Made by a program: the position numbers and the translations under genes. DNA of 64,000 nucleotides. It comes from Takakia lepidozioides (Eukaryota > Plantae > Bryophyta). Below, in pieces: positions 15,452 to 57,671 of the stretch. The notes beneath the pieces are model-generated. The model was given only the letters and a program-made list of their open reading frames with translations. It was not told the DNA's origin and ran no database searches. Numbering within the stretch: position 1 is the first letter of the stretch; each line of letters opens with the position of its first letter. The stretch spans positions 40,672,001 through 40,736,000 of the forward strand of contig CM060734.1 of NCBI GenBank assembly GCA_030704615.1, given 5' to 3'.

Positions 15452-15776
15452 TGTCAAGTTATTTACCACTAGTGTGAAACTAGCTAGGAAATAGCTATCT
15501 TTTACATATTGACATTTGGGATTGGCCCAAGTGTCAATCCAGGGGTCAAGGCAGATTTAGGCCCTGGAGTGGTTATCTTCACGGCAAGCGCGGGGGCTCA
15601 TCTTTCTCGAGTTGAGCCTCACCGCGCCTAGCTATGGCGCCGTAGTGTGGATTCCCCATGGCGTGGGGTGCACTTGGCTTGACTTGTATTTGAGTGATGA
15701 GGTTATATATGCATGAGTTTATGCTTCATCTTTGTGAGCTCGCATGAGCTTGTGCTTGTATTCTTCTTCTTTATCA
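15452..15776 (+). repeat. E1 repeat A1
   Basis: Direct repeat of 25865-26189, about 4-5 differences by eye; ends ttatCA. Confidence 0.95.
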
Positions 15777-15792
15777 CTCGAGAAAGATCAGC
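15777..15792 (+). promoter_or_regulatory. E1 self-priming PBS
   Basis: (a)ctcgagaaagat is the reverse complement of atctttctcgagt at 15600-15612 inside A1. Confidence 0.75.
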
Positions 15793-17289
15793 TCGTATCT
15801 GTGAGTGCCAGATACGAGTTAGTTGTAGCACTTGTGGTTTTTGCTTGAGAATGAGAGAAACCAAGTTGTTATGCAAGGAGCACCGTGGAGCTCTTAGTTG
15901 TTAGAAGCGGAGGCGATGTGGGTTACGAGGTCGTAGACCTTGGCATTCGATCTTCAGCTTCAGAGATGAAAGCACCATGCTGCAGGTAATTCCAGAGCAC
16001 TTGTGTACAGAGGTTCAGATGAGCAAGCACACGATTGGGAAGAGGACCAGTCAAGAGCAGGTTATAGTGGCTTTGGTGGCAAAGCTGAGAACTGGACTTG
16101 GGAATGCGAGCTTTCATTGTGTGAAGGATTGCAAGACCAAGCGAAATGGCTGATTTTGCTTGGGGCAAATCAGTGCACTTTGTGGATATGGTGAGATTTG
16201 GGTTTCAATCTCGAGCTTCGCATGAGAGGGCTCTTGTCATGCAAGAGCAGGGCTGGAACTCAGGAGCTAAGAGGTGCGGCAAGGCCATGGAATGTGCACC
16301 TAGGTTTCAGAGCTTGGAAGAAGAGTTCTTGCACCACAAGAGAAGTGTCTTGTGGCTGGAAATGTAAGCCTTAGGGTTTCAGGAGCTTGGCAAAGGCTAT
16401 GGAGTGCTTAGTCTTGTTAGAGAGCATCAAGGAGCCAAGGAGCCAAGATAGGGGGCTGATATCTCTTGTGTGAAGAGGTTGCATGTGTGGAGCATGTATT
16501 CAGCTCATTGAAGCTTCCATCTTCAAGCTTGGAGGGCAAGCAAGGAAGAGGGAAGGGCTGACTTCCCTTATGTGAGGGCAATGTATGTGTGGAGCATGCT
16601 ATCAGCCTGGTGAAGGCTTGCACTTTTAGGTGTGGGAGTGCAAGAAAGGAAGGAAGGGGCTGGTTTCCCTGTAGGGCATGTAGAGCATGCTTTCAGCCTG
16701 CTGAAGCTTGTATTATCAGGTTTGTGGGTGCAAGAAATGAAGCAAAGGAGCTGATTCTCTTATGGTGAGAGTGGGGCATGTGTGGAGCATGCCTTCAGCC
16801 CATTGAGGCTCTTGTTTTCAAGCCTTAGAGAGCTAGAACGGAAGGTCTAGGGCTGGTTTCCACTTGGAGTGAAAGAACAGCACTTGTAGGGCCTATGTGA
16901 GTTGGGGTTTCAACTTCAAGCTTGAAGGGAGCGCAACTCTTGAAGCAACAGGTGTAGAGGGCTGGAATAGGCTCTAAGACAGATGCTATGGTCAATGAGG
17001 GGAGTGCTTGAATGAGTGCTCACAAGGGCTGGGAACCAGCAGGGCTTGGTTGTTTGCCATTGAGTTTAGTGGCGTGTTTAGGGAGGCTAAGTGAGAAAGA
17101 AGGCTTGGTTTGTGGCAACCACCTCATGGCTTAGGGCTACTATGGTGGTGTGTGTGGGAGCCGAAAGAGCAAGGATACCTTGCTGATTTCCTCACAGCCA
17201 CCATAGCTCGGTGGAAAGAAGCCTAGAGTCCAAGAGACACAAACCCTAGCTTGGCGTGGCTAAAACCCTTGGAGAAATGGCTAAGCTGC

Positions 17290-17900
17290 CAGAGCGGCAT
17301 GTGGGGGCTTGTGACAAAGCTGTGACGGGCTGTGATGTGACATGTGTGTGCTGTGACAGGCTGTGAAAGTGAAATGTGACACGGGCTGTGTGTGTGTGGG
17401 CTCTGTGAAGGCTGTGCCCTGTTGGGGCTGTGACGGGCTGTGAGGCTGGTGCCCATGGCCTTTGGGGCTGTGACGGCTGTTGTGAGGCTGAGGACGGGCT
17501 GTGACAGGATGGCCTTTGGGGCTGTGACTGTGAACAGACCCTGTGTACTGTGAAGCTGTGGGCCTTTGGGGCTGTGACGGGCTGTGTGTGACAGGCTGTG
17601 GGGGGCTGTGACTGTGTGTGACAGGCAAAAGGGCTGTGACAGGCCGTGCTGGCCTTTGGGGCTGTGACGGGCTGTGAGGGGCTGAGGCAGGCCTGTGACA
17701 GGCTGTTGAAGGACTGACGGGCTGTGACTGTGACAAAACCTGTTGGACCCCAGGCACTGTGACAAGGCCCTGCCTGTGTAACTGTGAATGTGACCAATGT
17801 CTGTTCTGTTGTGGCCTTTGGGGCTGTGACGGGCTGTGGAAACGAGGCCCTGTGTGTGACTGTGTGGAAATGTGAAGAATGTGAACAAAACCAGTGAACC
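17290..17900. repeat. Low-complexity array (GGGCTGTGAC/CTGTGA variants) in E1 5' UTR
   Basis: Dozens of ctgtga-containing units. Confidence 0.9.
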
Positions 17901-18125
17901 TGTGGATGGCCTGTGCTGACTCGTGGAGGCACTGGTGGACTAAGGACTGGCATGTGGTCTGGAAGGCCTTTTGAAGCTCGTGGAGGGCGGTTTGAGGAGT
18001 ATCTTCATGATATTCCCATGGTAGGTGTAGGCTATGTTAGGAACTTAGTATTCCAACCATAAGCGCAACAGGTTCTCTACCCGGTTACCTTGTGGAGAGG
18101 GGGTTAGGGACATGTTCATGACCGG

Positions 18126-20700
18126 TTGAGTGTCAACACGGAGGTGCCACTAGTTGCTGGGACAGTGCCGGTTCGAGCACTAGCGATACTAGTGGGTACA
18201 CGACGAGGTGTGCGGTTTAGGCCACCTTCACCTCCTGTGTCTTCCACGGAAGGTTCTGATTCGGATTGTGAATCAGGAGGACTCATACCGGCGGTGCAAG
18301 TTGTTTCTTTGCCATTGTTGTGGGACACAATGGAGGAGATGTATGGAGCTACCAAGGGGCCACGAAGGTACTCTGGGGCGGTGGGCACCATTGAGTTGGA
18401 TGATTTTATCCAAGAGTTTGATAGTTGGTGTGATTTGCAGCAAATGCGCAATCCACAACTATTTACGCCGTTCATGGCATGGAAGGGCTGTTTCAGCACC
18501 TTGAGGGGCCGCCTATGGATGATTACCATGAGTTCAGGCGGGGGCATGAGGTTGAGATCGAGGAGTGGAGGATGTACTGGTCACCCGACTATGTCTCCAT
18601 CACTAGGGGCACTAGAGCCACGAGGGCAGTGGCTACACCTGCCGCTGCACCGGCAGCTTCAGCAAGCAGCAGTGGGACTGGTGGTACAGTAGCTACGACG
18701 TCCACCCAAGCCACTACCGCACCAGCACTAGCACCCGTGCCTGCCTTCAAACCCTGTTGTGGAGTTCTTCGAAGAGTTGAGAGGGAACTACCAAGGGGTG
18801 AGGACAGAGAAGTTGCGGAGCTTGCAAGAGTTCCAACGGAAGCCGACCGAGAGCTTGAGGGAGGCTTTCACTCGCATGAGGCGCTTGATAAATGTAACCC
18901 AAGGGGTTACGGAAGCTCAGGCAGTCCAATTCTGGTATGGGATATTGGACAAGGAGCTGAGGAGAAGGGTGCGGGATGCAACTCTCCTACAAGCGGCCCA
19001 ACCCACCTTAGCAAATGTGTTTTTGCTGGCAGAGCGGATAGAGCTCAACATGGTGGAGGAACGAGTGGTCATGGTGGGATTTGCTAAGGAGACACCACGG
19101 GGTAGTGGTGCTCCTAGCCAACCACTACCTCAACGTGCTCAAGGCAACAAGGGGGCTCAGGTGAAGCTCAGGGAAGGGCAGAGAGGACCTCAGATGCAGG
19201 GGTCTCTCCTTCATTTGCTGGCCAACAACGGGCGGATGTGGTGTGCTGGACATGTGGAGGACCCCATGTCAAGAAGGATTGCCCAGAGGGAGGCAAAGGG
19301 CGGCACATGCACAGCCTGCACAGTTGCAGTGTGGGCATTGTGGCAAGCACGGGCATGGAGAGGCCCAGTGTTATGGTTTGCATCCTGAGTTGCGCCCAGG
19401 CCAGTTCCAAGGGAACAATGGTGGCCGGGGGCGAGGTGGAGCAGCCCAGAGAGGACGAGGTGGCCAGCCACGAGGTGCAGGCCAAGGGCAAGCTCAACGT
19501 GGCCAAGGACGCGGAGGTCAGGGTGTTGACCAAGGCATGGCCAACCGGCTTCAGCAGCTAGAGCAGAGGCTCGCTGCCATGGCTACAGCTCAGGTGGTAC
19601 CGGCTCTAAGCCGGATGGTCCACCTCCTGCTCCTGAGGGAGGAGATATGGGAGGCATGGGATTCATGTGTGGAGCAGCACTACCACTAGTGCAGGTGGAG
19701 TCTGCTGCAGCCGTGACTCGAGGAGCAGCACGAGTTCCTGAGCCACGAGGTGCAGAGGTGGAGTTGGATCCACAGCGTGGGGAGGCAAGCCGTCAGGCTA
19801 GGCTTCCTCAGTCATTCACATTGGCGGAGACAGTGTCGACGCCATCCATGGCACCTAGTTCTCGCCCGACTGTTACCGAGGCGGAGGTTACTATGCCATT
19901 GGGGAGAGCTACACGGGTAGCACCACTACCTAGTGTTGCCAAGGCTACGGCAGCTAGTGTGCTGCTAGGAGCGGCCACATCTGTGTGCCAGGCTCCATTG
20001 TTCTCGGCTACCATGATTGCGACGCCGGGGGTAAGACCAGCTGAGGTGTTCAGGCTGGCAGCTACACTCTGTGAGAGTGGGGAGGTTACTTCATCTTCTG
20101 CGGAGATAGTGGGAGGTGTAGTGCCGGAGGGATCCTCGGATTTGAGGGTCAAGACTGCCACGGCGGCGCCATGGCAAGCTGCAGCTGCCAGGTTGATGGA
20201 GCTGCCAGCTAGGCCAGCCATTGAGCGCGCCATGGTGACACCTGGAGTTGTCATGTTAGACAACCAGGATGGCATTTTCTGTTTGAGTGGACCGGCAGGC
20301 AAGAGGTACCGGCCACTGCGGTCTTGTTGGACTCGGGAGCTCAGCCATGATGCTGGGCAGAGCTGCTATTGCAGGCTTGGGCCTCACGGAGGCGGATATG
20401 GAGCCTTGTCCTTTCCAGATACAGACGTCTCTGGGAGGATCGGAGCAGGCTCGGGGCATGACACGGCATGAGTTGGCTATCAGACTACGCCGGATCACCC
20501 TACAGATGGCTCAGTGATGCGAGCCAAGGCCATTGTGACAGACGCAGTCTCATACGATGTCCTGGTTGGTGGGGCAGTGTTGTACCCCATGGGCTTCACC
20601 CTGGATTTTTGGGAGGAGTCAGCTTCCTATAGGCCTGCATGGCAGTCAGGGGAGGGCCGGCGTGTGCAGCTCCCTGTGACGTTCATAGGAGGAGTTGCGG
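18126..20700 (+). pseudogene. E1 gag + aspartic protease (frameshifted)
   Basis: LDDFIQEFDSW; FQRKPTESLREAFTRM; zinc knuckles CWTCGGPHVKKDC and CGHCGKHGHGEAQC; protease LLDSGA near 20325-20342. Confidence 0.85.
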
Positions 20701-21038
20701 TTGCCCAGCGAGGCAAGATGCCGACACTAGCAGCATTCACAGCGGCAGTGAGTTGGCCTAGAGAGTTGCTTGAGGGCAATGCTCATTCAGAGGATGTACC
20801 ACCTCCGGGAGAGCAGGATGACATGTATGGTATGGCGGAGTTGCCTACCATGGTTGCTCAGACTCCATTGTGGGGCACGAGCAAGGATTTGCAGCGGGAT
20901 GCTGATCGACGGGTGCAACAAGCCTGGGTGGAGGCTTTTGTACCGTCAGGAGAGGAGGAGAGTGTGGGGATTGCACCAGGACCACCTCAATTGTCTCCAT
21001 TGGACACCACACCTATTGTGTGGCAGTCTCCGGATGAA

Positions 21039-21990
21039 GGCATTTGTCTTCTGGACTTGTTTGGCGGGATCAGCACCGGATTGGCTGCTGTGTTACAGGC
21101 AGGTGTACGAGTTCGGCGTTACCTGTATGTGGAGAGGGATGAGACTGCACGACGCGTTTCACTTCGCCATGTTGCTCAGTTGGTGCAGCGGTACCCTGAG
21201 TTGTTGTCGGTGTCTGCAATTCGTGGATATCAGCAGGCCTTGCCAGCAGACATTTCGTTGCTGGGGGCGCAGGATTTGGAGCGGGTTGGCTCCATTGATC
21301 TGGTAGTGGCAGGTTGGCCCTGCCAAGGGCATTCATCAGCCGGGCATGGCAATGGATTGCGAGACTCGAGGTCGGGTCTGTTTTGGGAGATGGTGCGGGT
21401 TTTGCGCCACTTGCAGCTTCATCAAGCTGTATCTCCAGCATACATCTTGGAGAATGCCACTGATGGGCGATTCTCGGGCCAGGGTGATGGCCAGTGTGCA
21501 TCAAGTCCGGTCGTGGCTTGGGTCAGCAGTGTTGCTAGATGCAGCTACAGTGGGGTCACGGGCTCATCGTCCACGGCTATGGTGGACTAACATGATGCCA
21601 CCCGCACTGCTCAAGCGTGCATTTGATGGGGTGCAGCGGCCAGCACATCTCACAGTGGATAACATTCTGGACACAGGGAGGCAGTCTCAACGTGTGAGAC
21701 ACGATGACCGTTCGCCTTTGGCAGTGGTCAACAAGGTGGGTCAACCACGAGCAGCATTACCTACACTGCTCAGCTTTCCCAGGATCGCATGCTTTCCGGG
21801 ATAGTGGACCTGGCCTCCTGTGGGATGCTCAGTTGCAGCAGTTAGTGGAGCCTAATGCTGACGAGCGTGAGCGGGCAATGGGTTTTACCACTGGTACCAC
21901 GCGGTGTCTCTTTCTCTTTCTGAGGCATCACGTCGTCAAGTGTTGGGGCAAGCAATGGATCTCAATTGCTTGACCTGGATTATCAGCTTG
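21039..21990 (+). pseudogene. E1 DNMT3-like C5 cytosine methyltransferase domain
   Basis: Motif I LDLFGGISTG; II YVERD; IV IDLVVAGWPCQ; SGLFWEMVR; VI YILEN; VIII AHRPRLWWTN; IX ERERAMGF; X RRQVLGQA. Confidence 0.9.
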
Positions 21991-22399
21991 GCTCTAGCTG
22001 AGCAACGCAGAGTGCGGAATACACTTCCCTCAATGGTCTCTCTGCCTACCGAGACGGTACAGGCAGTGAGTGGGGGCGAGCATATGAGGACCACGGGGTG
22101 CATGCATCCATGGCACACGTGGGAGGTGCTCGAGGTTCAGAGGGAGTTGGCAGCCAAGGCGGCTGTGATGGATGAGGTTGGGGATTCTTCTCGGTTGAGG
22201 AGGTCCTCAAGGATGAGATGATGGGGCAGGATGAGCCTTGTCATTGACTGAGCAGGTAGGGAGTACTGCTCAAGAGGTTGCAGCATAGCAACCACGGGAC
22301 GCGTCCTCTACCTCTAAGCCCACTGGACTTAAGGTTGTAGTTACGGAGGACAATTGGGAGCCTGACATTGGACCCATTGTCACCGGAGGAGAGAGACGA

Positions 22400-25300
22400 C
22401 GTATACGGCGGTTCCTGAGGGCTTACAGGAATTGCTTTGCCTTCAGTTTGAAGGACTTGGGAGCACTGAAGGGTCAAGAGATCCGTATTGAGTTGGCCAC
22501 TGACACGCCAATCTTTCGGAGACCCTATAGATACAGTGACATGGAGAGGTCTTTGATTCAGATGAGGACTCAAGATCTCTGGGAGGCAGGTTTGGTGGAG
22601 CTCTCTGGTGGAGAGTATGCTTCAGCCACAGTGATGCCAGCCAAGAAGGATGTCTATGGCAATTGGACGGAGAGACGTATGTGCGGTGATTACCGGCCTG
22701 TAAATCGTCAGACCAAGTCCGATAAGTATGCCATGCCAACACCAGAGGAGATCTTTGATGCCATCGGGCATGCTAAGGCCTTTAGCACTTTGGATTTACG
22801 ATCCGGATATCACCAGTTGCCAATCAAGGAGGCGGACAAGCAGAAGACGGCATTCTGGGGGATCAATGAGCACGGCAAGGATTGCCTATATCAGTGGCGG
22901 TTCTTACCATTTGGGCTTAAGAATGCTCCTGCAGAGTTTCAGAGAGTCATGGATAGGATTCTAGCAGGGGTGGACTTTGCTCGGTGCTACATAGATGACA
23001 TCATCATCTTAGTGTTACGATGGAGGAGCATGAGAGACACCTTCAGGTGGTATTGGAGCGCTTGAGAGCGCACGGATTGAAGTTGCATCCGGGGAAGTGC
23101 AAGTTTTTCCACAACCAGATTGAGTATCTGGGTCACATGATATATCCTGGAGGATTGGGGGTACAGCAGACTAAGGTAGAGGCCATTGCACAAATTCCAC
23201 GCCCCACGGATGTGAGCCGAGTTCGAGCTTTCATGGGGTTGGCAAACTATTATAGACGGTTTGTCAAGGGATTTAGTACCATTGCAAAGGCTCTAACCAA
23301 GCTGACCAAGGTGGACCAGGAGTGGCAGTGGGAAGATGAGCAGGAACGAGCTTTTCAAGAGCTCAAGGCGAGGTTGACCTCGGCGCCTATCTTGAGACGA
23401 CCTATCAGGGGGCGTCCCTTTCAGCTGCATACGGATTGGAGCATGCTGGGGCTTGGAGCGGTGCTCACACAGGTGGATGATGAGGGAAGAGAGTTCGTAG
23501 TGGCTTACGCTAGCCGCTCGAACAACGCTGCAGAGGCTAAGTACAGCTCATATGAGGGAGAGTGCTTAGCTGCAGTGTGGGCCGTGGCACACTTCAGGTG
23601 CTATCTATACGGCAATCTTTTCACCCTTGTCACGGATCACCAGCCACTCAAGTGGTTGATGGAGTCAGACAAGCTTACGGGGAAGCTTGCACGGTGGGCA
23701 CTTATACTCCAGGAGTATGACTTTCAGGTTGTGCATCGACCGGGTTTGGTCAATCGGGATGCGGATGGATTGAGTCGCAATCCATGCATGAGCCAGCAGG
23801 ATGACACTGGAGCTCGGTGGCATGGTGAGACGGACGAGGAGATGGTGCCGGGATGGCACGCATCTGCATTTTTGTGTATCTTGGCATCGGGAGGTCAGAT
23901 TGGACCTACAACAGGGATGACTGTAGACGGAGTGTCTGAGGACCCTGAGGCTAGTGATGAGCTAGGTGGTGCCAGAGATATACATGAGGATTCGGCTGTG
24001 TTGGACTACCTCCGCACGGGAGACACGGCAGCCATTGTGACTGCCAGGGAGAGGGATCGGATCCTGCAACGAGCCAAGAGGTTCAAGTGGGAGGGGATAC
24101 ACCTACTTCGAGTGTGGGAGGATGGTCGGGTGAGGATTGTGCCTCACCCCACACAGCGTGCACGGTTAGTGCGGCATGCCCATGAGGAGTTGGGGCATTT
24201 TGGAGTGCGACGCACTCACAGTTTACTGCAGGGCAGTATTGGTGGCGTGGTATGCATACAGAGGTGCAACAGTTTGTGGCTAGGTGCATGGTGTGTGACA
24301 GGGTGCGTGCTTCATTCAACGCCCCTACACCACAGTTGCATCCTTTACCTATCATGGGATTGGGCTACAGGTGGAGTCTTGACTTCGCAGGACCGTTGCC
24401 ACTGACTATGCGCCACCACAGATATGTGTTGGTGATGGTGGAGCACTTCTCCAAGTGGATTGAGTTGGTTCCATTGCCTGACAAGGTGAGGGGGCTGCGT
24501 ATGCATTCTTGGATCGTGTGCTTAGCCGATTTGGTGCTCCAGCTGAGGTACTCACGGACCAAGGGAGAGAGTTCTTGGGGGAGTTTCAGGCTTTGTGTGA
24601 TAAAGCCTTGATAGACCACCGCACCACTTCTCGGGATCATCCTGAGGCCGATGGCTTAGCAGAGAGAGTTGTTCAGACGGTGAAGAGGGGTTTGCGCAAG
24701 TATGGCTTGCAGAAGGGACACCTAGGAGATTGGGATCTTCAGGTTCCTTGGTTAGCCATGGGCTACAGGTTCAGCAAACAAGCATCACTTGCCTCCTTCT
24801 CACCATATTTCCTTCTCTTTGGCCGAGAGCCGGATTTGCCTGCAGCCATTCGTAGGGACACTGCTCAAGTCCTTAACCTTGACGATCCGGACGTGTGGGT
24901 ACGTGCATGTGATCAGCGTGCAGAGTTGTTCAAGAAAGTCATGCCCATGCTTTTGAGAACCTTGCCATTGCACAGCACCGTGATACGTTGAGGTATGCCA
25001 CTATACGTGGTGGAGGATATCGTCCTGGGGTTCGGAGGTTTAGCCCTGGTGACTATGTTTATTTGCAGCAGACTGCTCCTACGACTCTGGATGTTACTGC
25101 AGGGCGTGTTATTCTGAGGGTTCGAGAGGTGTTGCCCTCAGGGGTCCTGATCTTGGAGGGTCGGATGGCATGACTTGGAAGGACCATGTGCGTAATTGTG
25201 CGCCATGTCACCTTCCCAATGTCGATGGCAGAGTTGACCCAAACTTGGCAGTGGTACCTGCAGGTTTGAGGTGCATGCTCTGTGGGTCTGCCAAAGGGGC

Positions 25301-25412
25301 AGCCACCATGCTGGTGTGTGATCGATGCTCAAGGGGTTGGCATATGGGATGCTTGACACCACCTCTTGAGAAGGTTCCTGACGGAGATTGGTTGTGTCCA
25401 CACTGCTTGGGA
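22400..25412 (+). pseudogene. E1 RT - RNase H - DDE integrase - PHD finger (frameshifted)
   Basis: RMCGDYR, LDLRSGYHQL, PFGLKNAP, YIDD; HTDWS..YSSYEGECLA..TDHQPL; HEELGH..CMVC, WSLDF, TDQGREF, AERVVQTVK; CMLC..CDRCSRGWHMGCLTPPL..GDWLCPHC. Confidence 0.93.
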
Positions 25413-25664
25413 TAGTGGCAGTGGACATGACTGGAGGCAGCTAACAAGACATGGGAGGCCAAGCTCATAGGAGTCAATACATGAGATCCCAAGCTCAAGT
25501 TCACAGGTTGCAAGACGGCGACTAACGATGGGGCAACTCTTGCACCCGGCCTCTTGATCTATCGAGTTTGAGTGTAGTAGGGATAGTGGTGGAGGACTTA
25601 GTGAGGCTATGGTCACTATCACATCTTGTGGCTACCTGGACTTAGAGGGACCTAAGCACCAGCT

Positions 25665-25675
25665 AGGGGGGCGAT
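25665..25675 (+). promoter_or_regulatory. E1 polypurine tract
   Basis: aggggggcgat immediately before TGTG of B1; same motif in E2 (57140-57150) and E3 (53269-53279). Confidence 0.8.
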
Positions 25676-26380
25676 TGTGTGGACTAGTGACTGCCATAGT
25701 GGGCAGCGTAGTGGCAGCCTAGTGACTGACTAGTTGTAGCCTAGTGGTTGGACTAGTGGCTGGACTAGTGGTGACTAGTGGTATACTAGTGTGTGGTGTG
25801 CACATGTGTTGTGTGGTTTTGGACAGCGATGTAGTTGTGTAGCGATATGTATGCGCACGACAGCTGTCAAGTTATTTTACCACTAGTGTGAAACTAGCTA
25901 GGAAATAGCTAGCTTTTACATATTGACATTTGGGATTGGCCCAAGTGTCAATCCAGGGGTCAAGGCAGATTTAGGCCCTGGAGTGGTTATCTTCACGGCA
26001 AGCGCGGAGGCTCATCTTTCTCGAGTTGAGCCTCACCGCGCCTAGCTATGGCGCCGTAGTGTGGATTCCCCATGGCGTGGGGTGCACTTGGCTTGACTTG
26101 TATTTGAGTGATGAGGTTATATATGCATGAGTTTATGCTTCAGCTTTGTGAGCTCGCATGAGCTTGTGCTTGTATTCTTCTTCTTTATCTATTGTGTGGA
26201 CTAGTGACTGCCATAGTGGGCAGCGTAGTGGCAGCCTAGTGACTGACTAGTTGTAGCCTAGTGGTTGGACTAGTGGCTGGACTAGTGGTAGACTAGTGGT
26301 ATACTAGTGTGTGGTGTGCACATGTGTTGTGTGGTTTTGGACAGCGATGTAGTTGTGTAGCGATATGTATGCGCACGACA
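25676..26380 (+). repeat. E1 3' terminal block B1-gc-A2-B2
   Basis: B1 25676-25862 matches B2 26193-26380; junction GACAGCTGTC at 25859-25868. Confidence 0.95.
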
Positions 26381-26599
26381 AAAGCTTCTTGGACATAATG
26401 GAATCAAGGAGGAAAGGCGGCACAGTAAAAAAGAAGTCCCAAACTTGGGAGACATTGTCTTCATTCCTCACTCTGGTAAATTCCTTATCCACTCCCGTAC
26501 TTGTCATTTGGTTCTTGCACTGTGGTTAAATGTCATTTGAATTGGATTGCTTTGGGGGGTGAAGGCTGGGAAAGGTCCATTGTGGGTAAACGGAGAGAA

Positions 26600-33249: not shown

Positions 33250-33282
<33 letters not shown>

Positions 33283-36494: not shown

Positions 36495-36535
<41 letters not shown>

Positions 36536-40307: not shown

Positions 40308-40319
40308 CTAGAAGAAGAC
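40308..40319 (+). promoter_or_regulatory. E2 self-priming PBS
   Basis: (a)ctagaagaagac is the reverse complement of gtcttcttctagt at 40139-40151. Confidence 0.75.
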
Positions 40320-45400: not shown

Positions 45401-45699
45401 CATTTTCAGGGGTGGTGGCTTGGGGTGGTGAGCTCTTGGAGGGCAATAGCCATGCAGATGATAGGCCATCACCTGATGAGGACAAACAATTGGCATACAA
45501 GGCTGATTTGCTTCCTCATATGCCTGTGCATATTCCACTATGGGGTACGGTTGGGAATTTGCATCGAGTAGTAGACGAGTGTGTGCACCAAGCAGGCCTT
45601 TCCATTGATGAGTGAGGGGAGTTCAGTGACATCACCTGGACCTCCTGAGTTAGCTCCTTTGGACACGGTGCCCATTACCTGGCAACCACCTGACTCAGG

Positions 45700-46645: not shown

Positions 46646-47452
46646 TTGTGCATGGCTGAGCAACGGAGATTGCAAGCATTGATGGCTACTTCTACACTCC
46701 CATTGGATGGTGCATCCTCCCTGCCAACCGGGACGGTTAAGGTAGTGAGTGGGGGCGAGCACAGGATCGTGGGTTGCAAACACCCATGGTAGATGTGGGA
46801 TGAGATGCGCAAAGAGAGAGTCATTGGATCTCTCAAGCAGCAGTATGAGGAGTGGGGAGAGCCATGGATTGATGATCAATTGGAGGCCAAGATGGCCAAG
46901 GTTTTTGAAGAGGTTGAGAATGTTTCTTGCTCAGAGGATGTTCTCAAGGTGGCTATGGCGGAGTAAGTGGAGGCTACGCCACAGTTAGATTGGGTGGACA
47001 AGGCCCAAGAGGTTGCTATCTAGCAACCAAAGGATTCGTCTCCTACTTCCAAGCTTGGTGTACCCAAGGTTGCAGTTGTTCAGTTTAAATAAACACAGTG
47101 TGAAACTAACTAGAATAAAGCTAGTTATTTGTATTTAACACTTGGATTTAGTTCAAGTGTTAAGTCAGGTGTCAAGTTTAGTTTGACACCTGAACCGTCT
47201 TATCTTCACGTGAGCGTCAGTCGTGCGGCTCATCTCTCTTGAGTTGAGCCTGTGCGACCGAGCTCCTTCATGCTTTAGAATCTGAGTGTGCTTATGTAGG
47301 GGTATAGGTTGTTGTGGGGTGGAGTCCCCATAGCTTGGGGTGCCCCTGGCTCGACTATTATCTTAAAGAGTGATGTTGAGGGATTTCATGTTTCTTGTGT
47401 GAACAGTGTGTCATTTAGCTTTCTTGTCACTTGAGAGAGATGAACAGAGATA

Positions 47453-47759
47453 TGTCAACATAGTGAAACTGAAAGATGGGCGGTCATTGTCTATAGACAT
47501 TGTGGTAGTGGGCGTAGGCGCGAGACCACTCATAGCCCTTTTGAAGGAGCAGTTGGCTGTTGAGAAGGGAAGTTTCAAGGTTGATGGGTTTTTCAAAACA
47601 AGTGCTCCAGATGTCTATGCCGTTGGTGATGTTGCCACCCTCCCCCTGAAGCTGTTCGGTGACCTGCGCAGAGTAGAGCACGTTGATCATGCTCGCAAAT
47701 CAGCTATTCAAGCTGTTCAGGCTATCAAGGCAGCTGAGGAAGGGAAGACTATTGCTGAA
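47453..47759 (+). pseudogene. MDHAR: Captured monodehydroascorbate reductase fragment (intronless)
   Basis: VKLKDGRSLSIDIVVVGVGARP..KVDGFFKTSAPDVYAVGDVATLPLKLFGDLRRVEHVDHARKSAIQAVQAIKAAEEGKTI. Confidence 0.9.
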
Positions 47760-47872
47760 GGTGGGCTGGACCTGCTGTTTGGGTCTAAGAAGAAACACGA
47801 GGTTGATGTGAGCCTCACCAATGGCCACGCCAAGTTGACAGTGGAATGCTGCTGGTTTGGATTCGTGACATT
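47760..47872 (+). pseudogene. URM1: Captured ubiquitin-related modifier 1 fragment
   Basis: GGLDLLFGSKKKHEVDVSL..KLTV, then in a shifted frame MLLVWIRD. Confidence 0.6.
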
Positions 47873-48544
47873 CATTTCCAGGTGACGGGCGTGAGAGAGA
47901 GAGAGAGATACAGACACTTGTGCTGCGCAGAGCTTGCATGCCCGTACCTCGCCTCTCCGTCTTGGGGTCGCCTGCTCCTCGCTGCTTTCATGTGATGTAA
48001 GGCTCTTATTTCTGTCCAAAATGCGGAGAAGATGAGATTGTGGTGAAGCCTGATATATCAGATCGAGCAAATTGTGTTTGGTTTGGCCAAGAGCTTGTCT
48101 TGATAAGGCAGACTTCAGAAAATTGTGCGCATGTGCTGGCAAAGATGGCAACTGTAGACCATGCCCAGGGGAAAGCTCTGGATAGAACAGGCCAAGGGTC
48201 CAAATTTGAAGATACCTGTACACGTATTGAAAGTAGACCAGGCCGCCTTCAAATGGACGACTCTTTATCTGAGAATGGTCATGCATATGACAACAGAAAG
48301 TTGCATCAACAGGGCTGTTGCCAGTGAGACAGGTGCTTGTGGAGTAGTTGTCCAGAGCCTCTGTGGGGGTGAATGTATTGGAATGGGACGATGCTGTGCT
48401 GCCTAGCTTCCCCAGTTGGGCTTCCGTCAGTTGCTGGTTCAACCACCTGCACCCAATACCAGGAACACCTCTATCAAGACTCATGGGCGTTCAAAATTGC
48501 ACTGGCAAGTTTTCTTGAGCAGCATTTGTGGGGTTCTTTCAATC

Positions 48545-48842
48545 TGTCCTCCTTTTTCTCTTCCTCCTTGGAGGCAGCTTCTAGTGCAGCCCCACTTCCG
48601 GCAGCGGGTGCACTGCTCACAGCCACAGCGCCGCCACCTCCTGATCCAACATTGATGATGAGGTCATCAACACTTCTCTTCTCCAATAGCTTGGCGAACA
48701 GAGCGGGCCAGTAAGACTCCACTTGCACATTGGCGGCCTTCACTAGCGTTGCAATCTTGTCGGCAGTGATGGGAATGCCGTCATCATGTAAAATCAGAGC
48801 AGCGTAAGTGCAGGCAAGCTCGCTGTGCGCCACGGCAGCCAT
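48545..48842 (-). pseudogene. RPP1: Captured 60S acidic ribosomal protein P1, C-terminally truncated, intronless
   Basis: [70 protein letters not shown]; lacks the DMGFSLFD tail. Confidence 0.93.
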
Positions 48843-50165
48843 CGCTTCTCAACAAGACGTTGCACTCGAGAATCCAGACAAAGAGAATCCAGAGAGCAGG
48901 GGCTGCCAAGCGTGTGCCTGCGAAGGAGGATCCCAGCACTGCAACCTCTATGGGTAGATTGCAATTCCACCATTTCGGGCATTTGTAGGGCACGGTATTT
49001 TGACCTTGTTGGGAACCTGCAGTGAATCGCAAAAAAAAACGTGGGAACAGTTTTTAATGGCGAGAACGTTTTGGTGTTAAAAAAAAAAAACCTTTTGATC
49101 TAATTTAAATGATTTAGAGCCTAATTGGTCATAACTTTGTCAGATGGACTCCGTTTGACTCAGTTTTTGGGGGGATAGCTGCAGAAAGGGGAAATCTACC
49201 TATCTAGACCTACCTATGTTTTTGGGACTCTGCTAAAAATCTATGGAATTTTTAGAGTGTGAGTGTGCCATGAAGATCCACAATTCCGTTTCTAGAACCT
49301 GTTCTGGTCTATATGAGAGACAAATCTGTGGATGTCCTCCTTGTATGGCTGGGGGAAATGAGGACGTAATTGAAGGGCAGGTCTCGTCTCTTAGCCTGTG
49401 CACACAAGGGGACAAGATTTATGTTTCCCAAGGAACTCAGACTGATTTGAGTGGAGAACAGTTGGACGAGTTGATTGCATACTGGAAGTCAGGCATTAGC
49501 AGTAGACAACAAACTGCTGTAGTTGACGTTGAGGGCCTCAATATTGCTTTGGACAGTCAGAACTCTGTTGGAGCCAGCAGTTCTGCAGCTGTAAGTGAAA
49601 TACCAAAATGGGTGAAAGCTAGGCTTGGAACACAGCCAAAGACAGCCCCAGGGACCAAGGTGTTCAGCCACAAGGCCGTGGTATATTGGAGCAGAGGAGC
49701 AGGAGCTACACAAGTTTGTGCAATCAGACATGGTTGCAGCCGCACTCTGCACAAGGCAACCATGAGCGGGGGTTCATTAGCAATGACAAGTTTGTTTTGC
49801 TTGAGGGAGATGCAGTCATTCGCAACGAGGACACCTGCAACCGTCTCAAAGCTTTCGAGTTGAGAGACTGTCAGACCCTACCTTGATTTTCTTTAGCGTT
49901 CAGTGAGCGGGAGATAGGGGAGTATTGCTTTGTCTCTACCTGGCAGAAAGAGGAGGAGGGTTGGTTAAAGCGAGCTACTGTAGCTTGGGACAAGGTTAGT
50001 GGTAGGTTTCTGGACATAGATATACCTCCTACACCTTACCATCATGCAGAGCGAGGCACTTTGAGAGAAGTCTGGCAGTTGATAGCATAGATCAGGATTA
50101 GATCTTGTTTGGTCGGGCTTCTATTCTTCCCCTCCTTCTCTTTACTATTTTCATTACTTTGTACT

Positions 50166-53019
50166 ACTCAAGATCTTTGGGAGGCTGGTTTGGTGGAGCT
50201 ATCTGGGGGAGAGTATGCTTCAGCTACAGTGATGCCAGCCAAGAAGGATGTCTTTGGCAATTGGACGGAGAGACGTATGTGCGGTGATTACCGGCCTGTA
50301 AATCGTCAGACCAAGTCCGATAGGTATGCCATGCCAACACCAGAGGAGATCTTTGATGCCATTGGGCATGCCAAGGTCTTTAGTACGTTGGATTTACGAT
50401 CTGGATATCACCAGTTGCCGATCAAGGAGGCGGATAAGCAAAAGACAACATTCTGGGGGATCAATGAGCACGGGAAGGATTGCCTATACCAGTGGCGGTT
50501 CTTACCATTTGGGCTTAAGAACGCTCCGGCAGAGTTTCAGAGAGTCATGGACAGGATCCTAGCAGGGGTGGAGTTTGCTCGGTGCTACATAGATGACATC
50601 ATCATCTTTAGTGCTACGGTGGAAGAGCATGAGAGACACCTTCAGGGGGTATTTGAGCGCTTGAGGGCGCACGGATTGAAGTTACATCCGGGAAAGTGCA
50701 AGTTTTTCCACAACCAGATTGAGTATCTGGGTCACATGATATATTCTGGAGGATTGGGGGTACAGCAGACTAAGGTAGAGTCCATTGCACAGGTTCCACG
50801 TCCCACGGATGTGAGCCGAGTTCGAGCTTTCATGGGGTTGGCAAACTATTATAGACGGTTTGTCAAAGGATTTAGTGCCATTGCAAAGGCTTTAATCAAA
50901 CTAACCAAGATGGACCAGGAGTGGCAGTGGGAAGATGAGCAAGAACAAGCTTTTCAAGAGCTCAAGGCGAGGTTGACCTCGGCGCCCATCTTGAGACGAC
51001 CTATCAGGGGGCGTCCTTTTCAGCTGCATACAGATTGGAGCATGTTGGGGCTTGGAGCGGTGCTCACACAAGTGGATGATGAGGGAAGAGAGTTCGTAGT
51101 GGCTTATGCTAGCCGCTCGAACAATGTTGCAGAGTCTAAGTATAGCTCATATGAGGGAGAATGCTTAGCTGCAGTGTGGGCCGTGGCACACTTCAGGTGC
51201 TATCTATACGGCAATCTCTTCACCCTTGTCATGGATCACCAACCACTCAAGTGGTTGATGGAGTTAGACAAGCTTACGGGGAAGCTTGCACGGTGAGCAC
51301 TCATCCTTCAAGAGTATGACTTTCAGGTTGTGCATCGACCGGGTTTGGTCAATGGGGATGCAGATGGGTTGAGTCGCAATCCATGCACGAGCCAGCAGGA
51401 TGACACTGGAGCTCGGTGGCATGGTGAGATGGACGAGGAGATGGTGCCCGGATGGCATGCATCTGCATTTCTGTGTATCTTGGCAGCGGAAGGCCAGGTT
51501 GGACCTGCAACAGGGATGACTGTAGATCAAGTGTCTGAGGACCCTGAGGCCAGCAATGAGCAAGGTGACGCCAAACATATACATGAGGATTCAGTTGTGT
51601 TGGACTACCTCCGCACTGGAGACACTGCAGCCACTGTGACTGCCAAGGAGAGGGATCGGATCCTACAACGAGCCAAGAGGTTCAAGTGGGAGGGGACACA
51701 CCTGCTCCGAGTGTGGGAGGATGGTCGAGATGATTGTGCCTCACCCAACATAGCGGGCACGGTTAGTGCGGCATGCCCATGAGGAGTTGGGGCATTTTGG
51801 GGTGCCACGTACTCATAGTCTACTGCAGGGGCAGTATTGGTGGCGTGGTATGCACACAGAGGTGCAACAATTTGTGGCTAGGTGCATGGTGTGTGATAGG
51901 GTTCGTGCTTCATTCAACGCCCCTACTCCACAATTGCACCCTCTTCCGATCATGGGATTGGGCTACAAGTGGAGTCTTGACTTCGCAGGGCCGTTGCCAC
52001 TGACCATGCGCCACAACAAGTACGTGTTGGTGATGGTGGAGCACTTCTCCAAGTGGATTGAATTGGTTCCATTGCCTGATAAGGCTAGTGAGGGAGCTGC
52101 GTATGCATTCTTGGATTGTGTGCTTAGCCGATTCGGTGCTCCAGCTAAGGTACTCACGGACCAAGGGAGAGAGTTCTTGGGGGAGTTTCAGGCTTTGAGT
52201 GACAAGGCCTTGATAGACCACCGCACCACTTCTCGGGATCATCCTGAGGCCAATGGCTTGGCAGAGAGAGTTGTTCAGACAGTAAAGAGGGGTTTGCGCA
52301 AGTATGGCTTGCAGAAGGGACACCTAGGAGATTGGGACCTTCAGTTACCTTGGTTAGCCATGGGCTACAGGTTCAGCAAGCAAGCATCACTTGCCTCCTT
52401 CTCACCATACTTTCTTCTCTTTGGCCGCGAGCCGGATTTGCCTACATCCATTCGCAGAGAAGCTGCTACAGTTCTTAACCTTGACGATCCGGATGTGTGG
52501 GCACGTGCATGTGAGCAGCGTGCAGAGTTGTTCAAGAAAGTCATGCCCATGGCTTTCGAGAACCTTGCCATTGCACAACATCGTGATACGTTGAGGTATG
52601 CTACCATACGTGGTGGGGGCTATCGTCTTGGGGTTCGGAGATTCAACCCTGGTGACTATGTCTATCTGCAGCAGACTGCTCCTACGACATTGTATATGAC
52701 TGCATGACGTGTTATTTTGAGGGTTCGAGAGGTTTTGCCCTCAGGCGTCTTGGTCTTGGAGGGTCGGGATGGCATAACTTGGAAGGACCATGTGCGTAAT
52801 TATACGCCATGTCACCTTCCGAATGTCGATGGCAGGATTGACCCAAACCTGGCAGTGGTATCTGCAAGTTTGAAATGCATGTTGTGTGGGTCTACTAGAG
52901 GAGTAGCCACCATGCTGGTGTGTGAACGATGCTCTAGAGGTTGGCATATGGGATGCTTGACTCCACCTCTTGAGATGGTTCCTGCTGGGGATTGGTTATG
53001 TCCGCATTGCATTGGATAG
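50166..53019 (+). pseudogene. E3 RT - RNase H - integrase - PHD
   Basis: Highly similar to E1 22568-25412; YIDD, DDE core, PHD; stops and frameshifts. Confidence 0.93.
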
Positions 53020-53804
53020 TGGGAGTGGATACAACCATGGAAGGCTAACAAGAAACGCAAGGCCCAGCTACTCGGAGACCTTGAACACACGAGGTCCTGG
53101 CTCAAGTTCACAGATTGCAAGACGACGACTAACGATGGGGCTACTCTTGTACCCGGCCTCTTGGTCGATAGAGTTTGAGTACAATAGGGACAGTAATAGA
53201 GGACTTAATATGGCTGTGGCTATTACATCTTGTAGCTATCTGAAGTTAGAGGGACCTATCCACCAACTAGGGGGGCGATTGTGACAGACTACTTTATTGT
53301 GCATATATGTGTGGTGTGGTTTGGACAGCGATGTAGTTGTGTAGCGATATGTATGCGCACGACAGCTGTCAAGTTAAATAAACACAGTGTGAAACTAACT
53401 AGAATAAAGCTAGTTATTTGTATTTAACACTTGGATTTAGTTCAAGTGTTAAGTCAGGTGTCAAGTTTAGTTTGACACCTGAACCGTCTTATCTTCATGC
53501 GAGCGTCAGTCGTGCGGCTCATCTCTCTCGAGTTGAGCCTGCGCGACCGAGCTCCTTCATGCTTTAGAATCTGAGTGTGCTTATGTAGGGGTATAGGTTG
53601 TTGTGGGGTGGAGTCCCCATAGCTTGGGGTGCCCCTGGCTCGACTATTATCTTAAAGAGTGATGTTGAGGGATTTCATGTTTCTTGTGTGAACAGTGTGT
53701 CCTTTAGCTTTCTTGTCATTGTGGCATACTACTTTATTGTGCATATATGTGTGGTGTGGTTTGGACAGCGATGTAGTTGTGTAGCGATATGTATGCGCAC
53801 GACA

Positions 53805-56800
53805 CAGTCACTGAGGACAATTGGGAACCAGATGTTGGACCTACAGTCACCGGAGGAGAGAGACGGAGGATCCATCGATTTCTAAGGGCTTATAGAAATT
53901 GCTTTGCCTTCGGTTTGAAGGATTTGGGGAGTTTGAAGGGTCAGGAGATTCGTATTGATTTGGCAAGTGACACGCCAATCTTTCGAAGGCCCTACTGGTA
54001 TAGTGACATGGAGAGGTCATTGATCCAGTCACGGACTATGGAGTTGTTCGAAGCTGGATTGGTGGAGTTGTCAGGCGGGGAGTATGCCTCGGCAACGGTG
54101 ATGCCAGCTAAGAAGGATATCTATGGCAATTGGACAGAAAGAAGGATGTGTGGGGACTATCGTCCTGTGAACCGTCAGACTAAGTCCGATAGATATGTCA
54201 TGCCAACTCCAGATGAGATCTTTGATGCCATTGGGCATGCAAAGGTGTTTAGCACATTGAACTTGCGATCCGGTTACCACCAGTTGCCAATCAAAGAGGC
54301 TGACAAACAAAAGACGACATTCTGGGGGATTGACCAACATGGGAAGGATTGTTTGTACCAATGGCGGTTCTTACCGTTTGGGTTGAAGAATGCTCCTGCA
54401 GAGTTTCAGAGGGTCATGGATAGGATTCTCGCGGGGCTAGACTTCGCCCGGTGCTACATTGATGACATCATCGTCTTTAGTGCTACGGTTGAGGAGCATG
54501 AGAGACACATTCAGGTGGTGTTTGAGCGCTTGAGAGCGCACGGGTTGAAATTGCACCCCGGAAAGTGCAAGTTCTTCCACAATTAGATTGAGTATCTGGG
54601 CCACATGATATACCCTGGAGGATTGGGTGTTCAATAGACAAAGGTGGAGGCCATTGCATGCATTCCACCCCCATGTGAGCAGAGTTTGTGCTTTCATGGG
54701 ATTGGCAAACTACTATCGACGGTTTGTCAAGGGATTTAGCAACATTGCAAAGGCTCTTACCAAGTTGACCAAGGTGGGTCAGGAGTGGCAGTGGGAGGAG
54801 GAGCAGGAGGAAGCCTTTGAGGAACTCAAGGCTCGATTGACTTCTGCGCCTATTTTGAGGCGGCATATTCGGGGGCGGCCTTTCCAGCTACATACGGATT
54901 GGAGTATGCTGGGGATTGGAGCAGTGCTCACACAGGTGGATGATGAGGGAAGAGAGTTTGTAGTGGCATATGCTAGCCGCTCGAATAATGATGCCGAGGC
55001 AAAGTATAGTTCCTATGAAGGGGAGTGTCTAGCTGCAGTATGGGCAGTGGCACATTTCAGATGCTACCTCTATGGCAATCTCTTCACCCTTGTCACGGAT
55101 CACCAACCATTGAAGTGGTTGATGGAGTCAGACAAGCTTACAAGGAAGCTTACACGGTGGGCACTTATGCTTCAAGAGTATGACTTCCAGGTGGTGCATC
55201 GAGCCGGTATTGTCAATCGGGATGCAGATGGATTGAGTCGTAATCCATGCACGAGCGAGCATGATGATACTGGAGCTCGGTGGCATGGTGTGACGGATGA
55301 GAAGATGGTGCCAGGATGGCATGCATCGGCATTTTGGTGCATTCTAGCAATGGGAGCTCAAGCTGGTTCATCTCATGCGATTGGTCATGTAGATAGCGTG
55401 CATGACGATCCAGAGACTAGTGAGGAGTTTGGTGGTGCTCAGGATGTACATGAAGATGCAGCAGTGTTGGTCTACCTTTGTACTGGAGAGACAACAGCCA
55501 GTGTGACTGCTAAGGAGAGAGATCGGATCCTACAACGAGCCAAGAGGTTCAAGTGGGAGGGGACTCACCTACTCCGGGTATGGGAGGATGGGTGAGTGAG
55601 GATTGTGCCTCATCCAACACAACGAGCACGATTGATATGCCATGCCCATGAGGAGTTGGGACATTTTGGGGTGCGGCGCACTCATAGTTTGCTGCAAAGG
55701 CAGTATTGGTGGCGGGGCATGCACACGGATGTGCAACAGTTAGTGGCAAGGTGCATGGTGTGTGATAGAGTGCGGGCTTCTTTCAACGCCCCTACTCCAC
55801 AATTGCATCCTTTACCCATTATGGGTTTGGGCTATCGTTGGAGTCTTGACTTTGCAGGCCCATTGTCATTGACGATTCGTCATAACAAGTATGAGTTGGT
55901 GATGGTGGAACACTTCTCCAAATGGATTGAACTGGTGGCATTGCCTGACAAGGCAAGTGAGGGGGCTGCATATGCATTCTTAGATCGAGCGCTTAGCCAT
56001 TTTGGTGCTCCAGCCGAGGTACTCACGGACTAGGGGAGAGAGTTCTTGGGGGAGTTTCAGGCTTTGTGTGAGCAAGCCTTGATAGATCACCGCACTACTT
56101 CTCGGGATCATCCCGAGGCTGATGGCTTGGTGGAGAGAGTTGTTCAGACAGTCAAGAGAGGTTTGCGCAAGTACGGTTTGCAGAAGGGACACCTAGGAGA
56201 TTAGGACCTTCAGCTGCCTTGGCTAGCTATGGGCTATAGGTTCAGCAAACAAGCTTCACTTGCCTCCTTCTCACCTTACTTTCTTCTCTTTGGCTGAGAG
56301 CTGGATTTGCCTGCATCTATTCGCAGGGAGGCTGCAGTAGTTCTCAACCTTGATGATCCAGATGTGTGGACACAAGCATGTGCCCAGCGGGCAGAGTTGT
56401 TCAAGAGAGTCATGCCTATGGCTTTTGGGAACCTTGCTATTGCCCAACACCAAGACACATTGAGGTACGCCACTATACGTGGAGGGGGATATCGGCCAAG
56501 TGTTCGGCGTTTCCACCCTGGGACTATGTGTATTTGCAGCAGACAGCACCTACGACCTTAGATGTTACAACTGGACGTGTGATTCTAAGGGTCAGGGAGG
56601 TGTTGCCTTCAGGAGTGTTGATTCTGGAGGGTCGAGATGGCATGGTATGGAAGGACCATGTGCGCAATTGTGCGCCATGTCACCTTCCACATGTGGATGG
56701 GAGGATAGATCCCAACCTTGCAGTGGTACCTGCAGGGTTGCGTTGCATGCTATGTGGGCATGCTGGTGGCGCCGCAACCATGTTGGTGTGTGACAAATGC

Positions 56801-56893
56801 TCAAGGGGGTGACACATGGGATGCTTGACACCGCCACTTGAGGAGGTTCCTATCGGAGAATGGTTGTGTCCACGATGTCTTGGACAGAGGTAG
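53805..56893 (+). pseudogene. E2 RT - RNase H - integrase - PHD (continuation after E3)
   Basis: Same motifs with several stops; PHD CMLC..CDKC..HMGC..WLCPRC. Confidence 0.92.
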
Positions 56894-57671
56894 TGGGCAT
56901 GACAATGCTGAAGCGGACAAGTGATCCAAGGTCTAGCTAGTGGGGCTTCAATGTCATGGATACTCAACTGAAGATCATGGATTGCATGAAGGCGACTAAC
57001 GATGGGGCTACGTTTGCACCCGGCCTCTTGATCTATCGACTTCAGGTGTTGGGACTTGTGCGATTGAAGACCAAGCGATGATCTTATTGGGATGGATACT
57101 TGCAAGCTATCCGGTGTTAGAGGGACCTAATCACCAGCTAGAGGGGCGATTGTGGCGTGGCTTTCTAGGACTATATGCTAGGAAGTGTGGTTGGACAGCG
57201 ATGTATGTTGTGGCATGATCCTTAGGTGCACGACAGCTGTCATGGTTTTGTTTGTGATTAGTTAGAAATAGTTATTTCTAGCTAATTATGACATTATACA
57301 TTTATATTTGTATTTTGTTGGCATTGGGACTTCATTTGGTTCCATGTGCCAAGTGAGGTGACGAACCTCACTTGGGACGTGGGGAGGTTATCTCCACGTG
57401 AGACGTAGGCAAGCTCGTCTTCTTCTAGTCGAGCCTCCCGAGGCCTCTCTCGCCGCCATAGCTCTAGTACTTGAGATGGAGAGTGGGTGAGGTCTGTATG
57501 GTGGAGTCCTTTAGCAAAGGTGCCATTGGCTTGACTTATATAATGTGATAGAGTGGTTTCTCCTCTTTTCACCATTTCCGTATCATTGTGGCGTGGCTTT
57601 CTAGGACTATATGCTAGGAAGTGTGGTTGGATAGCGATGTATGATGTGGCACGATGCTTAGGTGCACGACA

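Follow-up and report, generated by a model that had tools for sequence, protein, structure and literature searches.

A Dnmt3-carrying Ty3/Gypsy lineage with permuted terminal repeats in Takakia lepidozioides, and a candidate route of integration through a palindrome inside the long terminal repeat

Split direct repeats, in the order A1-internal-B1-A2-B2, are found in the PAT-like, Ngaro, and TOC-type retrotransposons of the order DIRS, which carry a tyrosine recombinase, possess neither a protease nor a DDE integrase, and produce no target site duplication (TSD) on insertion; some elements of this order also carry a methyltransferase domain. A layout of this kind has also been recorded in KnitGypsy-Dnmt3 of the alga Klebsormidium nitens (de Mendoza et al. 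2018, Nat Commun 9:1341, PMC5890265), for which the legend of Fig. 4c combines DIRS-like repeats (“the same as that of a DIRS retrotransposon”) with Gypsy domains. Here we analyzed three retrotransposon insertions, named E1, E2, and E3, in a stretch of 64,000 nucleotides (nt) from Takakia lepidozioides (assembly GCA_030704615.1, contig CM060734.1, positions 40,672,001 to 40,736,000, forward strand), hereafter the window. As judged from their domains and repeats, they are Ty3/Gypsy elements of the Dnmt3-carrying KnitGypsy-Dnmt3 lineage first seen in Klebsormidium. Like KnitGypsy-Dnmt3, they combine the Gypsy domain order, a Dnmt3-type methyltransferase inside Pol, and DIRS-like A-coding-B-A-B repeats, whereas, unlike the element of K. 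nitens, the window copies reside in another host, are degenerate, and include one chimera (E2) that lacks gag, protease, and Dnmt. In contrast to PAT-like, Ngaro, and TOC-type elements, the lineage encodes an aspartic protease and a DDE integrase bearing zinc and PHD domains, is flanked by 4-bp TSDs, and has termini of the TG..CA type.

Two other systems are relevant for comparison. Tf1-type elements have ordinary long terminal repeats (LTRs) and a chromodomain integrase (PMC6317226). The window lineage resembles the self-priming Ty3/Gypsy elements Tf1/sushi and plant Tcn1 in that its primer binding site (PBS) appears to be complementary to the 5′ end of its own RNA and not to a tRNA, but its integrated LTR is permuted and its integrase ends in a PHD finger, with no chromodomain (the comparison is one of features). 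Retroviral integrases (foamy virus [PFV] and HIV-1) cleave the palindromic LTR-LTR junctions of circular DNA (Delelis et al. 2005, 2007; PMC1180852, PMC1905944), a restriction-like DDE integrase cut at the palindrome of the two viral ends that generates 3′-processed ends and to which we liken the palindrome described below. In retroviruses, however, the palindrome is the U5/U3 junction itself and linear DNA is the main substrate, whereas here the palindrome lies inside the U3 of every LTR, the U5/U3 junction is not palindromic, and the permuted product is found in every copy seen.

Structure, ends, and distribution of the permuted insertions

Layouts were read from a self-BLAST of the window and by direct inspection of every junction. 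As the initial annotation had reported, all three insertions, which lie on the forward strand, are arranged A - PBS - internal - polypurine tract (PPT) - B - GC - A - B. E1 (15452-26380) is composed of A1 (15452-15776, starting with TGTCAAGT), an internal region ending in the PPT (25665-25674, AGGGGGGCGA), B1 (25675-25862, beginning TTGTG and ending GCACGACA), A2 (25865-26190), and B2 (26192-26380, with the GACA end at 26380); its A copies are 98.8% identical and its B copies 99.5%. The outer element E3 (39960-57671) is bounded by the TSD AAGA (39956-39959 and 57672-57675) and contains A1 (39960-40307), the PPT (57140-57149, AGAGGGGCGA), B1 (57150-57235), A2 (57238-57585), and B2 (57586-57671), with a repeat identity of ~96%. 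Nested in the pol region of E3 is E2 (47077-53804), the copy with the TGTT 5′ end that the initial annotation had labeled E3; it is flanked by the TSD CAGT (47073-47076 and 53805-53808) and comprises A1 (47077-47429), the PPT (53269-53278), B1 (53279-53364), A2 (53367-53718), and B2 (53719-53804), with ~98% identity between repeats, and this nesting order fits the repeat identities of the two elements. The 5′ end reads TGTC in E1 and E3 and TGTT in E2, all three 3′ ends read GCACGACA, and the exact palindrome GACAGCTGTC occupies the B1/A2 boundary in all three (25859-25868 in E1, 53361-53370 in E2, and 57232-57241 in E3), where it is the proposed site of integrase recognition and cleavage. The insertion termini are the two halves of the palindrome, with its central GC lost, as had been claimed. 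The complete LTR, B-GC-A, is present once per integrated copy, at an internal position, and of the TG..CA pair, TG opens A and CA closes B.

Two paralogous empty sites delimit this block. For E1, an inverted duplicate of its flanks (3095-6160) contains, at 3213-3216 on the reverse strand, a site at which the flanks are contiguous and CAACG stands in the place of E1. The second is provided by E1 itself, whose pol is unbroken and has a single TAGT at the point matching the insertion of E2 in E3. Together, these sites identify the entire A-to-B block as the inserted unit. The duplication that harbors the first site is inverted and comprises ~3.4 kb of host sequence with 96-97% identity (3095-6160 versus 12154-15451 plus 26378-26496), with ~6 kb between the arms and E1 in one of them; the open reading frames (ORFs) tested in the arms gave no Pfam domain, and an ORF with DUF4216, a plant transposase-associated domain, lies nearby (794-1351).

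Relatives were collected at 91 loci by homologous-protein look-up in named genomes and by a metagenome contig scan with an alignment of reverse transcriptase (RT), RNase H, and integrase; each locus was assigned a form from its self-BLAST and from matches to an A/B sequence library, and duplicates were removed before counting. Complete A-int-B-A-B copies numbered 21, namely, the three in the window, two in Calypogeia (L001 and L004), one in Marchantia (L091), three in Closterium (L006, L087, and L088), and 12 in metagenomes. Another 13, including those of K. nitens (L003) and Riccia (L005), read int-B-A-B with the 5′ end beyond the contig, so that the permuted form is represented by ~34 independent copies, five of them young, with repeats 98.8-100% identical. 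Approximately 13 copies are A-int-B or int-B only, a class that the initial annotation had predicted, and two are variants (L027 and L031). By contrast, ordinary B-A LTRs at both ends were found at none of the 91 fetched loci, and the mirror form A-B-A-int-B was absent among the ~47 classified copies from those loci. Solo A-B remnants, also predicted, were not found when searched for in the window.

Of the 19 complete copies compared, from six or more taxa, 13 have TGTC...GACA bordered by a perfect 4-bp TSD (E2, E3, and 11 copies elsewhere), and three more match at three of four positions, while the number of perfect matches expected by chance is ~0.07. These data extended the TSDs first noted for E2 and E3 to copies outside the window. 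Several A-int-B copies have TSDs as well. The same layout, TGTC..GACA ends, and GACAGCTGTC junction occur in Calypogeia, Marchantia, Riccia, Closterium, Klebsormidium, and metagenome loci; the junction ...CGACA-GC-TGTCA... is conserved from Klebsormidium and Closterium to liverworts, and in old copies it decays through C-to-T changes. The Marchantia copy L091 (6826-17657 of its locus) is young, with repeats 99-100% identical and the TSD GGTT. Three further loci were treated apart: a degenerate Marchantia fragment without repeats (L002) is uninformative, the Chara element (L090, 38% identity) has ordinary LTRs and a PBS of the tRNA-Met type and served as an outgroup only, and the family member in Sphagnum fallax (L089, 17287-18542) is disrupted, its A2 meeting an inverted partial copy (A′, B′) head-to-head.

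In all families, from Closterium to liverworts, a CpG is retained in the B-end half-site (e.g., 25855-25862 in E1) at four bases from the terminal CA (CGACA), whereas the A half-site does not retain one, and the palindrome core CAGCTG has CHG sites. That self-methylation might be linked to the choice of cut site is pure speculation.

Coding content and the products of reverse transcription

Because the window copies are broken by stop codons and frameshifts, their ORF pieces were searched separately against Pfam. E1, whose reading frame is interrupted at many places, contains a gag-like ORF fragment (18759-19385, a weak Retrotrans_gag match), a C5 cytosine DNA methyltransferase (Dnmt3-like) piece with a Calypogeia homologue (20514-21587, PF00145, 8e-11), two overlapping ORF pieces with RT, RNase H, and the start of the integrase zinc domain (22448-24402), and fragments of the integrase core, rve (24252-24988). 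E3 carries a gag-like ORF piece (42802-43809) and a C5 DNA methyltransferase piece (45581-46162, 1.3e-12) and, like E1, also has RT, RNase H, the integrase zinc domain, and the rve core. In E2, an ORF with RT and RNase H (50109-51293) is followed by an integrase with the H2C2 zinc domain and rve core (51766-52704) and, at the C-terminal end of the integrase region, by a PHD finger (52717-53016, 1.2e-10). All of these pieces are on the forward strand. E2 has no gag, protease, or Dnmt, and its 5′ half consists of host gene fragments directly after the PBS, including an intronless pyridine nucleotide-disulphide oxidoreductase fragment (47406-47882, forward strand) and a 60S acidic ribosomal protein ORF (48477-48842, reverse strand). 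The absence of the Dnmt domain from E2 is due to its chimeric nature: it looks like captured host cDNA in a non-autonomous element that has retained the full A-int-B-A-B ends and the TSD.

In a nearly intact copy from Calypogeia fissa (L001), a single reading frame, interrupted by two in-frame stops, encodes gag (CCHC), protease (DSG), a Dnmt3-like domain, RT, RNase H, integrase, and a PHD finger in that order. The domain order RVT_1, RT_RNaseH, Integrase_H2C2, and rve is the Pol order of Ty3/Gypsy; the best PDB matches are Ty3 Gag-Pol and Ty3 RT, and the integrase aligns with the Ty3 and PFV integrases with its D, D, and E residues in place. A CCHC gag is present, and the DSG aspartic protease lies between gag and Dnmt. 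The 4- to 6-bp TSD typical of the superfamily is found, E1 being the exception, whereas its two identical complete terminal LTRs with TG..CA ends are missing. PF00145 was detected upstream of RT in the polyprotein in E1, E3, and Calypogeia, Closterium, and Marchantia proteins; the best PDB matches of this domain are DNMT3A/3B, and it occurs in every autonomous member examined. Neither this domain nor the PHD finger had been noticed in the initial annotation, which had also overlooked the self-priming PBS described below.

A recombinase was searched for in several ways. For the three window elements and the near-intact Calypogeia copy, every sizeable ORF on either strand was scanned with Pfam; the 1,339-amino-acid gag-protease-Dnmt ORF was scanned in three pieces at relaxed thresholds; and phmmer and a nine-sequence profile were run against PDB, together with an inspection of the precomputed Pfam domains of 19 homologues. 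No match to a tyrosine recombinase (Phage_integrase or other) was obtained in the window elements, the Calypogeia copy, the Marchantia and Sphagnum homologues, or the PDB profile search, in agreement with the earlier statement that only a DDE integrase is visible.

The PBS is directly after A, as annotated before, but it is not of the tRNA type. From the first base after A onward, 10-16 nt form a perfect complement to a site that lies 150-300 nt into A. In E1, the PBS (15777-15788, CTCGAGAAAGAT) pairs with 15600-15611 (ATCTTTCTCGAG), which would be the first RNA bases and the self-primer, in an A1 repeat that also has a TATA-like box and the putative transcription start; in E3, the PBS (40308-40319, CTAGAAGAAGAC) pairs with 40139-40150 within A1; and in E2, where the pairing has partly decayed, 10 nt of the PBS region (47430-47443) pair with 47230-47239. 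The pairing sequence differs by family, with CTCGAGAAAGAT in E1, CTAGAAGAAGAC in E3, and others in Calypogeia, Marchantia, Closterium, and metagenome families, and this amounts to covariation in at least 10 copies. A TATA-like box lies ~30 nt upstream of the complementary site, and in the predicted fold of the putative 5′ RNA, the first 12-13 nt are paired with the PBS. The covariation of the pairings between families marks the PBS as a Tf1-type self-primer, and the TATA-like box and the fold are consistent with a putative transcription start at the complementary site. A tRNA-type PBS was considered and rejected: no PBS begins with TGG, and self-priming explains the PBS instead. ARAGORN detected no tRNA genes in the window.

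At the other end of the internal region, a conserved G-run PPT adjoins the start of B in all families. With the PBS directly after A and the PPT directly before B, the standard rules of reverse transcription yield B-GC-A as the LTR of the cDNA. This part of the initial annotation, which had described B plus A as a canonical TG..CA LTR, stood up to the comparison, whereas the TG..CA ends did not: the start of B and the end of A read TG...CA only in the window copies, against TTGG...TTTA in Calypogeia, GTTG...TTTA in Marchantia, ATAC...CAAT in a large metagenome group, CACG...TGCT and others in Closterium, and TACC...TTAG in Klebsormidium. Because the outer ends of B-GC-A are unconserved among relatives, they are not integrase sites, and conservation of integrase-type ends is confined to the palindrome, with its two halves.

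Given this LTR, the A2/B2 boundary is a U5-U3 join and was necessarily made at the DNA level. The join is usually exact, as in E2 and E3. The T of the CA-t-TG junction, which had been read as an extra base, belongs to B, which begins TTGTG directly after the PPT AGGGGGGCGA in B1 too; among the window elements, only E1 has one extra nucleotide (T). In Closterium, the very young copy L088, with A repeats 99.75% identical, has two extra nucleotides (TT), and L006 has 19; the Closterium proteins available for comparison with the latter copy are of other families, at 64-77% identity. Single extra bases are present at the join of several metagenome copies. In the first of the two variants (L027, 13207-13527 of its locus), B2 is reduced to its last 29 nt after A2, with the TSD CCAC intact, and in the second (L031, 13192-13484), B-GC-A is followed by unrelated sequence with no B2. 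Moreover, no primer site for copying B2 from RNA was found downstream of B2. The variability of the join and the lack of a primer site past B2 both argue for its formation as DNA in every cycle, whether through end joining or through a template jump from end to end; the comparison of copies suggests that the A2/B2 join forms anew each time.

A candidate integration route and its alternatives

The explanation that we favor, with slightly better than even confidence, is a polar opening of end-joined B-GC-A cDNA by the integrase at the palindrome inside the LTR. The PBS-complementary site in A would be where transcription starts; the RNA would use its own 5′ end as the primer of the minus strand, as in Tf1, and the PPT would prime the plus strand, giving a cDNA with B-GC-A LTRs whose outer ends are not integrase substrates. 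The U5 end (the end of A) would then be joined to the U3 end (the start of B) at the DNA level, mostly exactly and sometimes with a few extra bases. Next, the DDE integrase may treat the two halves of the 5′-LTR palindrome GACA|GC|TGTC as the ends of the element; cuts on the 3′ side of each CA would leave 2-nt GC overhangs that are lost, and strand transfer with a 4-bp stagger would produce A-int-B-GC-A-B flanked by a 4-bp TSD. The A-int-B copies could arise if both palindromes were used, from a one-LTR intermediate, or by later B/B recombination; all three origins fit the sequences equally, which cannot separate them.

Only the palindrome of the 5′ LTR would serve as the opening point. As a symmetric 2-LTR circle should give the mirror form equally often (0 versus ~34 copies), the substrate or the reaction appears to be polar, and this implies an asymmetric substrate, e.g., a nicked or gapped circle or the product of a plus-strand end-to-end template jump, and speaks against a free closed 2-LTR circle. 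The joined form might have a strand discontinuity at the 5′-LTR palindrome only; alternatively, the plus strand could jump templates where A ends and B starts and then stall at that palindrome. The earlier proposal that end-joined cDNA is opened by integrase at the palindrome was thus largely supported, but its freely symmetric 2-LTR circle was not.

Several points weigh against a polar opening of joined cDNA. The joined intermediate is deduced from integrated copies. The strict polarity is not predicted by a plain 2-LTR circle and demands an extra assumption. Single-base fillers in old copies could be later mutations. E1 has no TSD (its flanks are CAAT at 15448-15451 and AAAG at 26381-26384), a few other copies also lack a clean one, and 5 bp (CAACG) of the empty paralog are missing at the filled site of E1, which reflects an integration that went awry and deleted a little of the target or else an indel that separates the paralogs for unrelated reasons. 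To our knowledge, cleavage of an internal palindrome has never been shown for a retrotransposon integrase.

The main rival to integrase opening of joined cDNA is copying of the DIRS/PAT type without a recombinase, in which the whole A-int-B-A-B unit, including the A2/B2 join, would be reproduced from the parental RNA, the internal B-GC-A would restore the missing tips, and the integrase would process linear ends (...GACA-G / C-TGTC...). This scheme explains the strict polarity directly, requires only normal terminal processing by the integrase, and matches a repeat layout identical to that of PAT/Ngaro-type elements. Nevertheless, the covarying PBS after A1 and the PPT before B1 predict a B-GC-A LTR and leave no way to copy B2, and the join differs among related and young copies (exact, +1, +2, +19, or with a truncated B2), whereby we regard the scheme as unlikely. 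Less likely again is a literal circle, in which host end-joining would yield a closed, symmetric 2-LTR molecule that is opened at either intra-LTR palindrome. It accounts for the U5/U3 join with its small fillers, for the loss of GC and the TSDs, and for the A-int-B copies if both palindromes are cut, and the cleavage of junctions has a retroviral precedent; however, two identical palindromes should generate A-B-A-int-B as often as the observed form, of which there are ~34 copies, five of them young, against none of the mirror. If A/A recombination eroded mirror copies more quickly, some of them could have been missed, but hardly all.

Integration by a tyrosine recombinase, as in true DIRS, Ngaro, and PAT elements, with the enzyme overlooked or acting in trans, is very improbable. 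Split direct repeats are otherwise a hallmark of such elements, but 4-bp TSDs and TG..CA-type termini are signatures of a DDE integrase, the profile searches described above gave no recombinase, and the interval between gag and Dnmt is occupied by the DSG aspartic protease. Finally, although short-repeat B-A-B blocks are of the kind that assemblers can misbuild, an assembly artefact or a post-insertion rearrangement of ordinary LTR elements can practically be dismissed, given the same structure, conserved junction, and outer TSDs at more than 40 loci in independent chromosome-level and metagenome assemblies of at least six taxa and the two empty sites that delimit the block in the window.

Lineage, surroundings, and significance

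The initial annotation knew of no described Gypsy lineage of this kind. The legend of Fig. 4c in PMC5890265 shows that the lineage, with its odd repeat layout, has already been recorded once, in an alga, and what we describe is a barely characterized kind of element and not a new one. Termini, TSDs, an att palindrome, the PBS type, and a mechanism were not found in the accessible portion of that article, and our literature search found no other paper that uses the name KnitGypsy-Dnmt3 and none that proposes a mechanism. A homologue at 41% identity exists in K. nitens (protein KFL_000540030), where the locus is B-A-B with the same CACGACAGCTGTCA junction. The RT-RNase H ORF of the window has its nearest matches in liverworts, with 75% identity to Riccia, 72-73% to Calypogeia, and 64% to Marchantia, followed by ~42-57% to Closterium and 41% to K. 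nitens; the window copies are thus additional members of that lineage. The lineage is old and widespread in streptophyte algae and bryophytes. What is new is the problem of polarity, the TSDs and att palindrome, the self-priming of the PBS, and how broad the clade is (Klebsormidium, Closterium, liverworts, and probably mosses).

A few other features of the window are recorded here. Within E3, tandem or diverged repeats with 74-80% identity occupy 41453-42023, in the 5′ untranslated or gag-upstream region. A 102-bp direct repeat with 92% identity is found at 57671-57772, starting exactly at the 3′ end of E3, and 5 kb downstream at 62658-62759. An F-box and Kelch-repeat gene in two ORF pieces and a Copia-type polymerase fragment (SH3_retrovirus domain) are located at 58159-59361 and 63357-63803, on the reverse strand.

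Tentatively, and with somewhat less than even confidence, we envisage an ancient plant and algal Gypsy clade with an obligatory route of integration, through end-joined cDNA and a polar, restriction-like cut by a DDE integrase at a palindrome within the LTR, that is a convergent counterpart of DIRS/PAT replication and may be linked to the Dnmt3 domain. If this mechanism is true, linear cDNA with LTR ends would not be the sole substrate evolved for retroelement integrases, the old “circle junction” model of integration would be revived as the normal route of a natural lineage, and the split-repeat architecture would have two origins, each tied to its own, unrelated integration enzyme. In bryophyte and charophyte genomes, where the elements are abundant, standard LTR finders will assign them wrong ends, TSDs, and insertion ages. 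In addition, the Dnmt3 copies of the elements pass as host genes in the Marchantia annotation, where gag-protease-Dnmt ORFs of Marchantia polymorpha (P0121-P0135) are listed as hypothetical or DNA (cytosine-5) methyltransferase genes, e.g., Mp_4g09160 and Mp_8g17980. The young copies in M. polymorpha render the question experimentally tractable.

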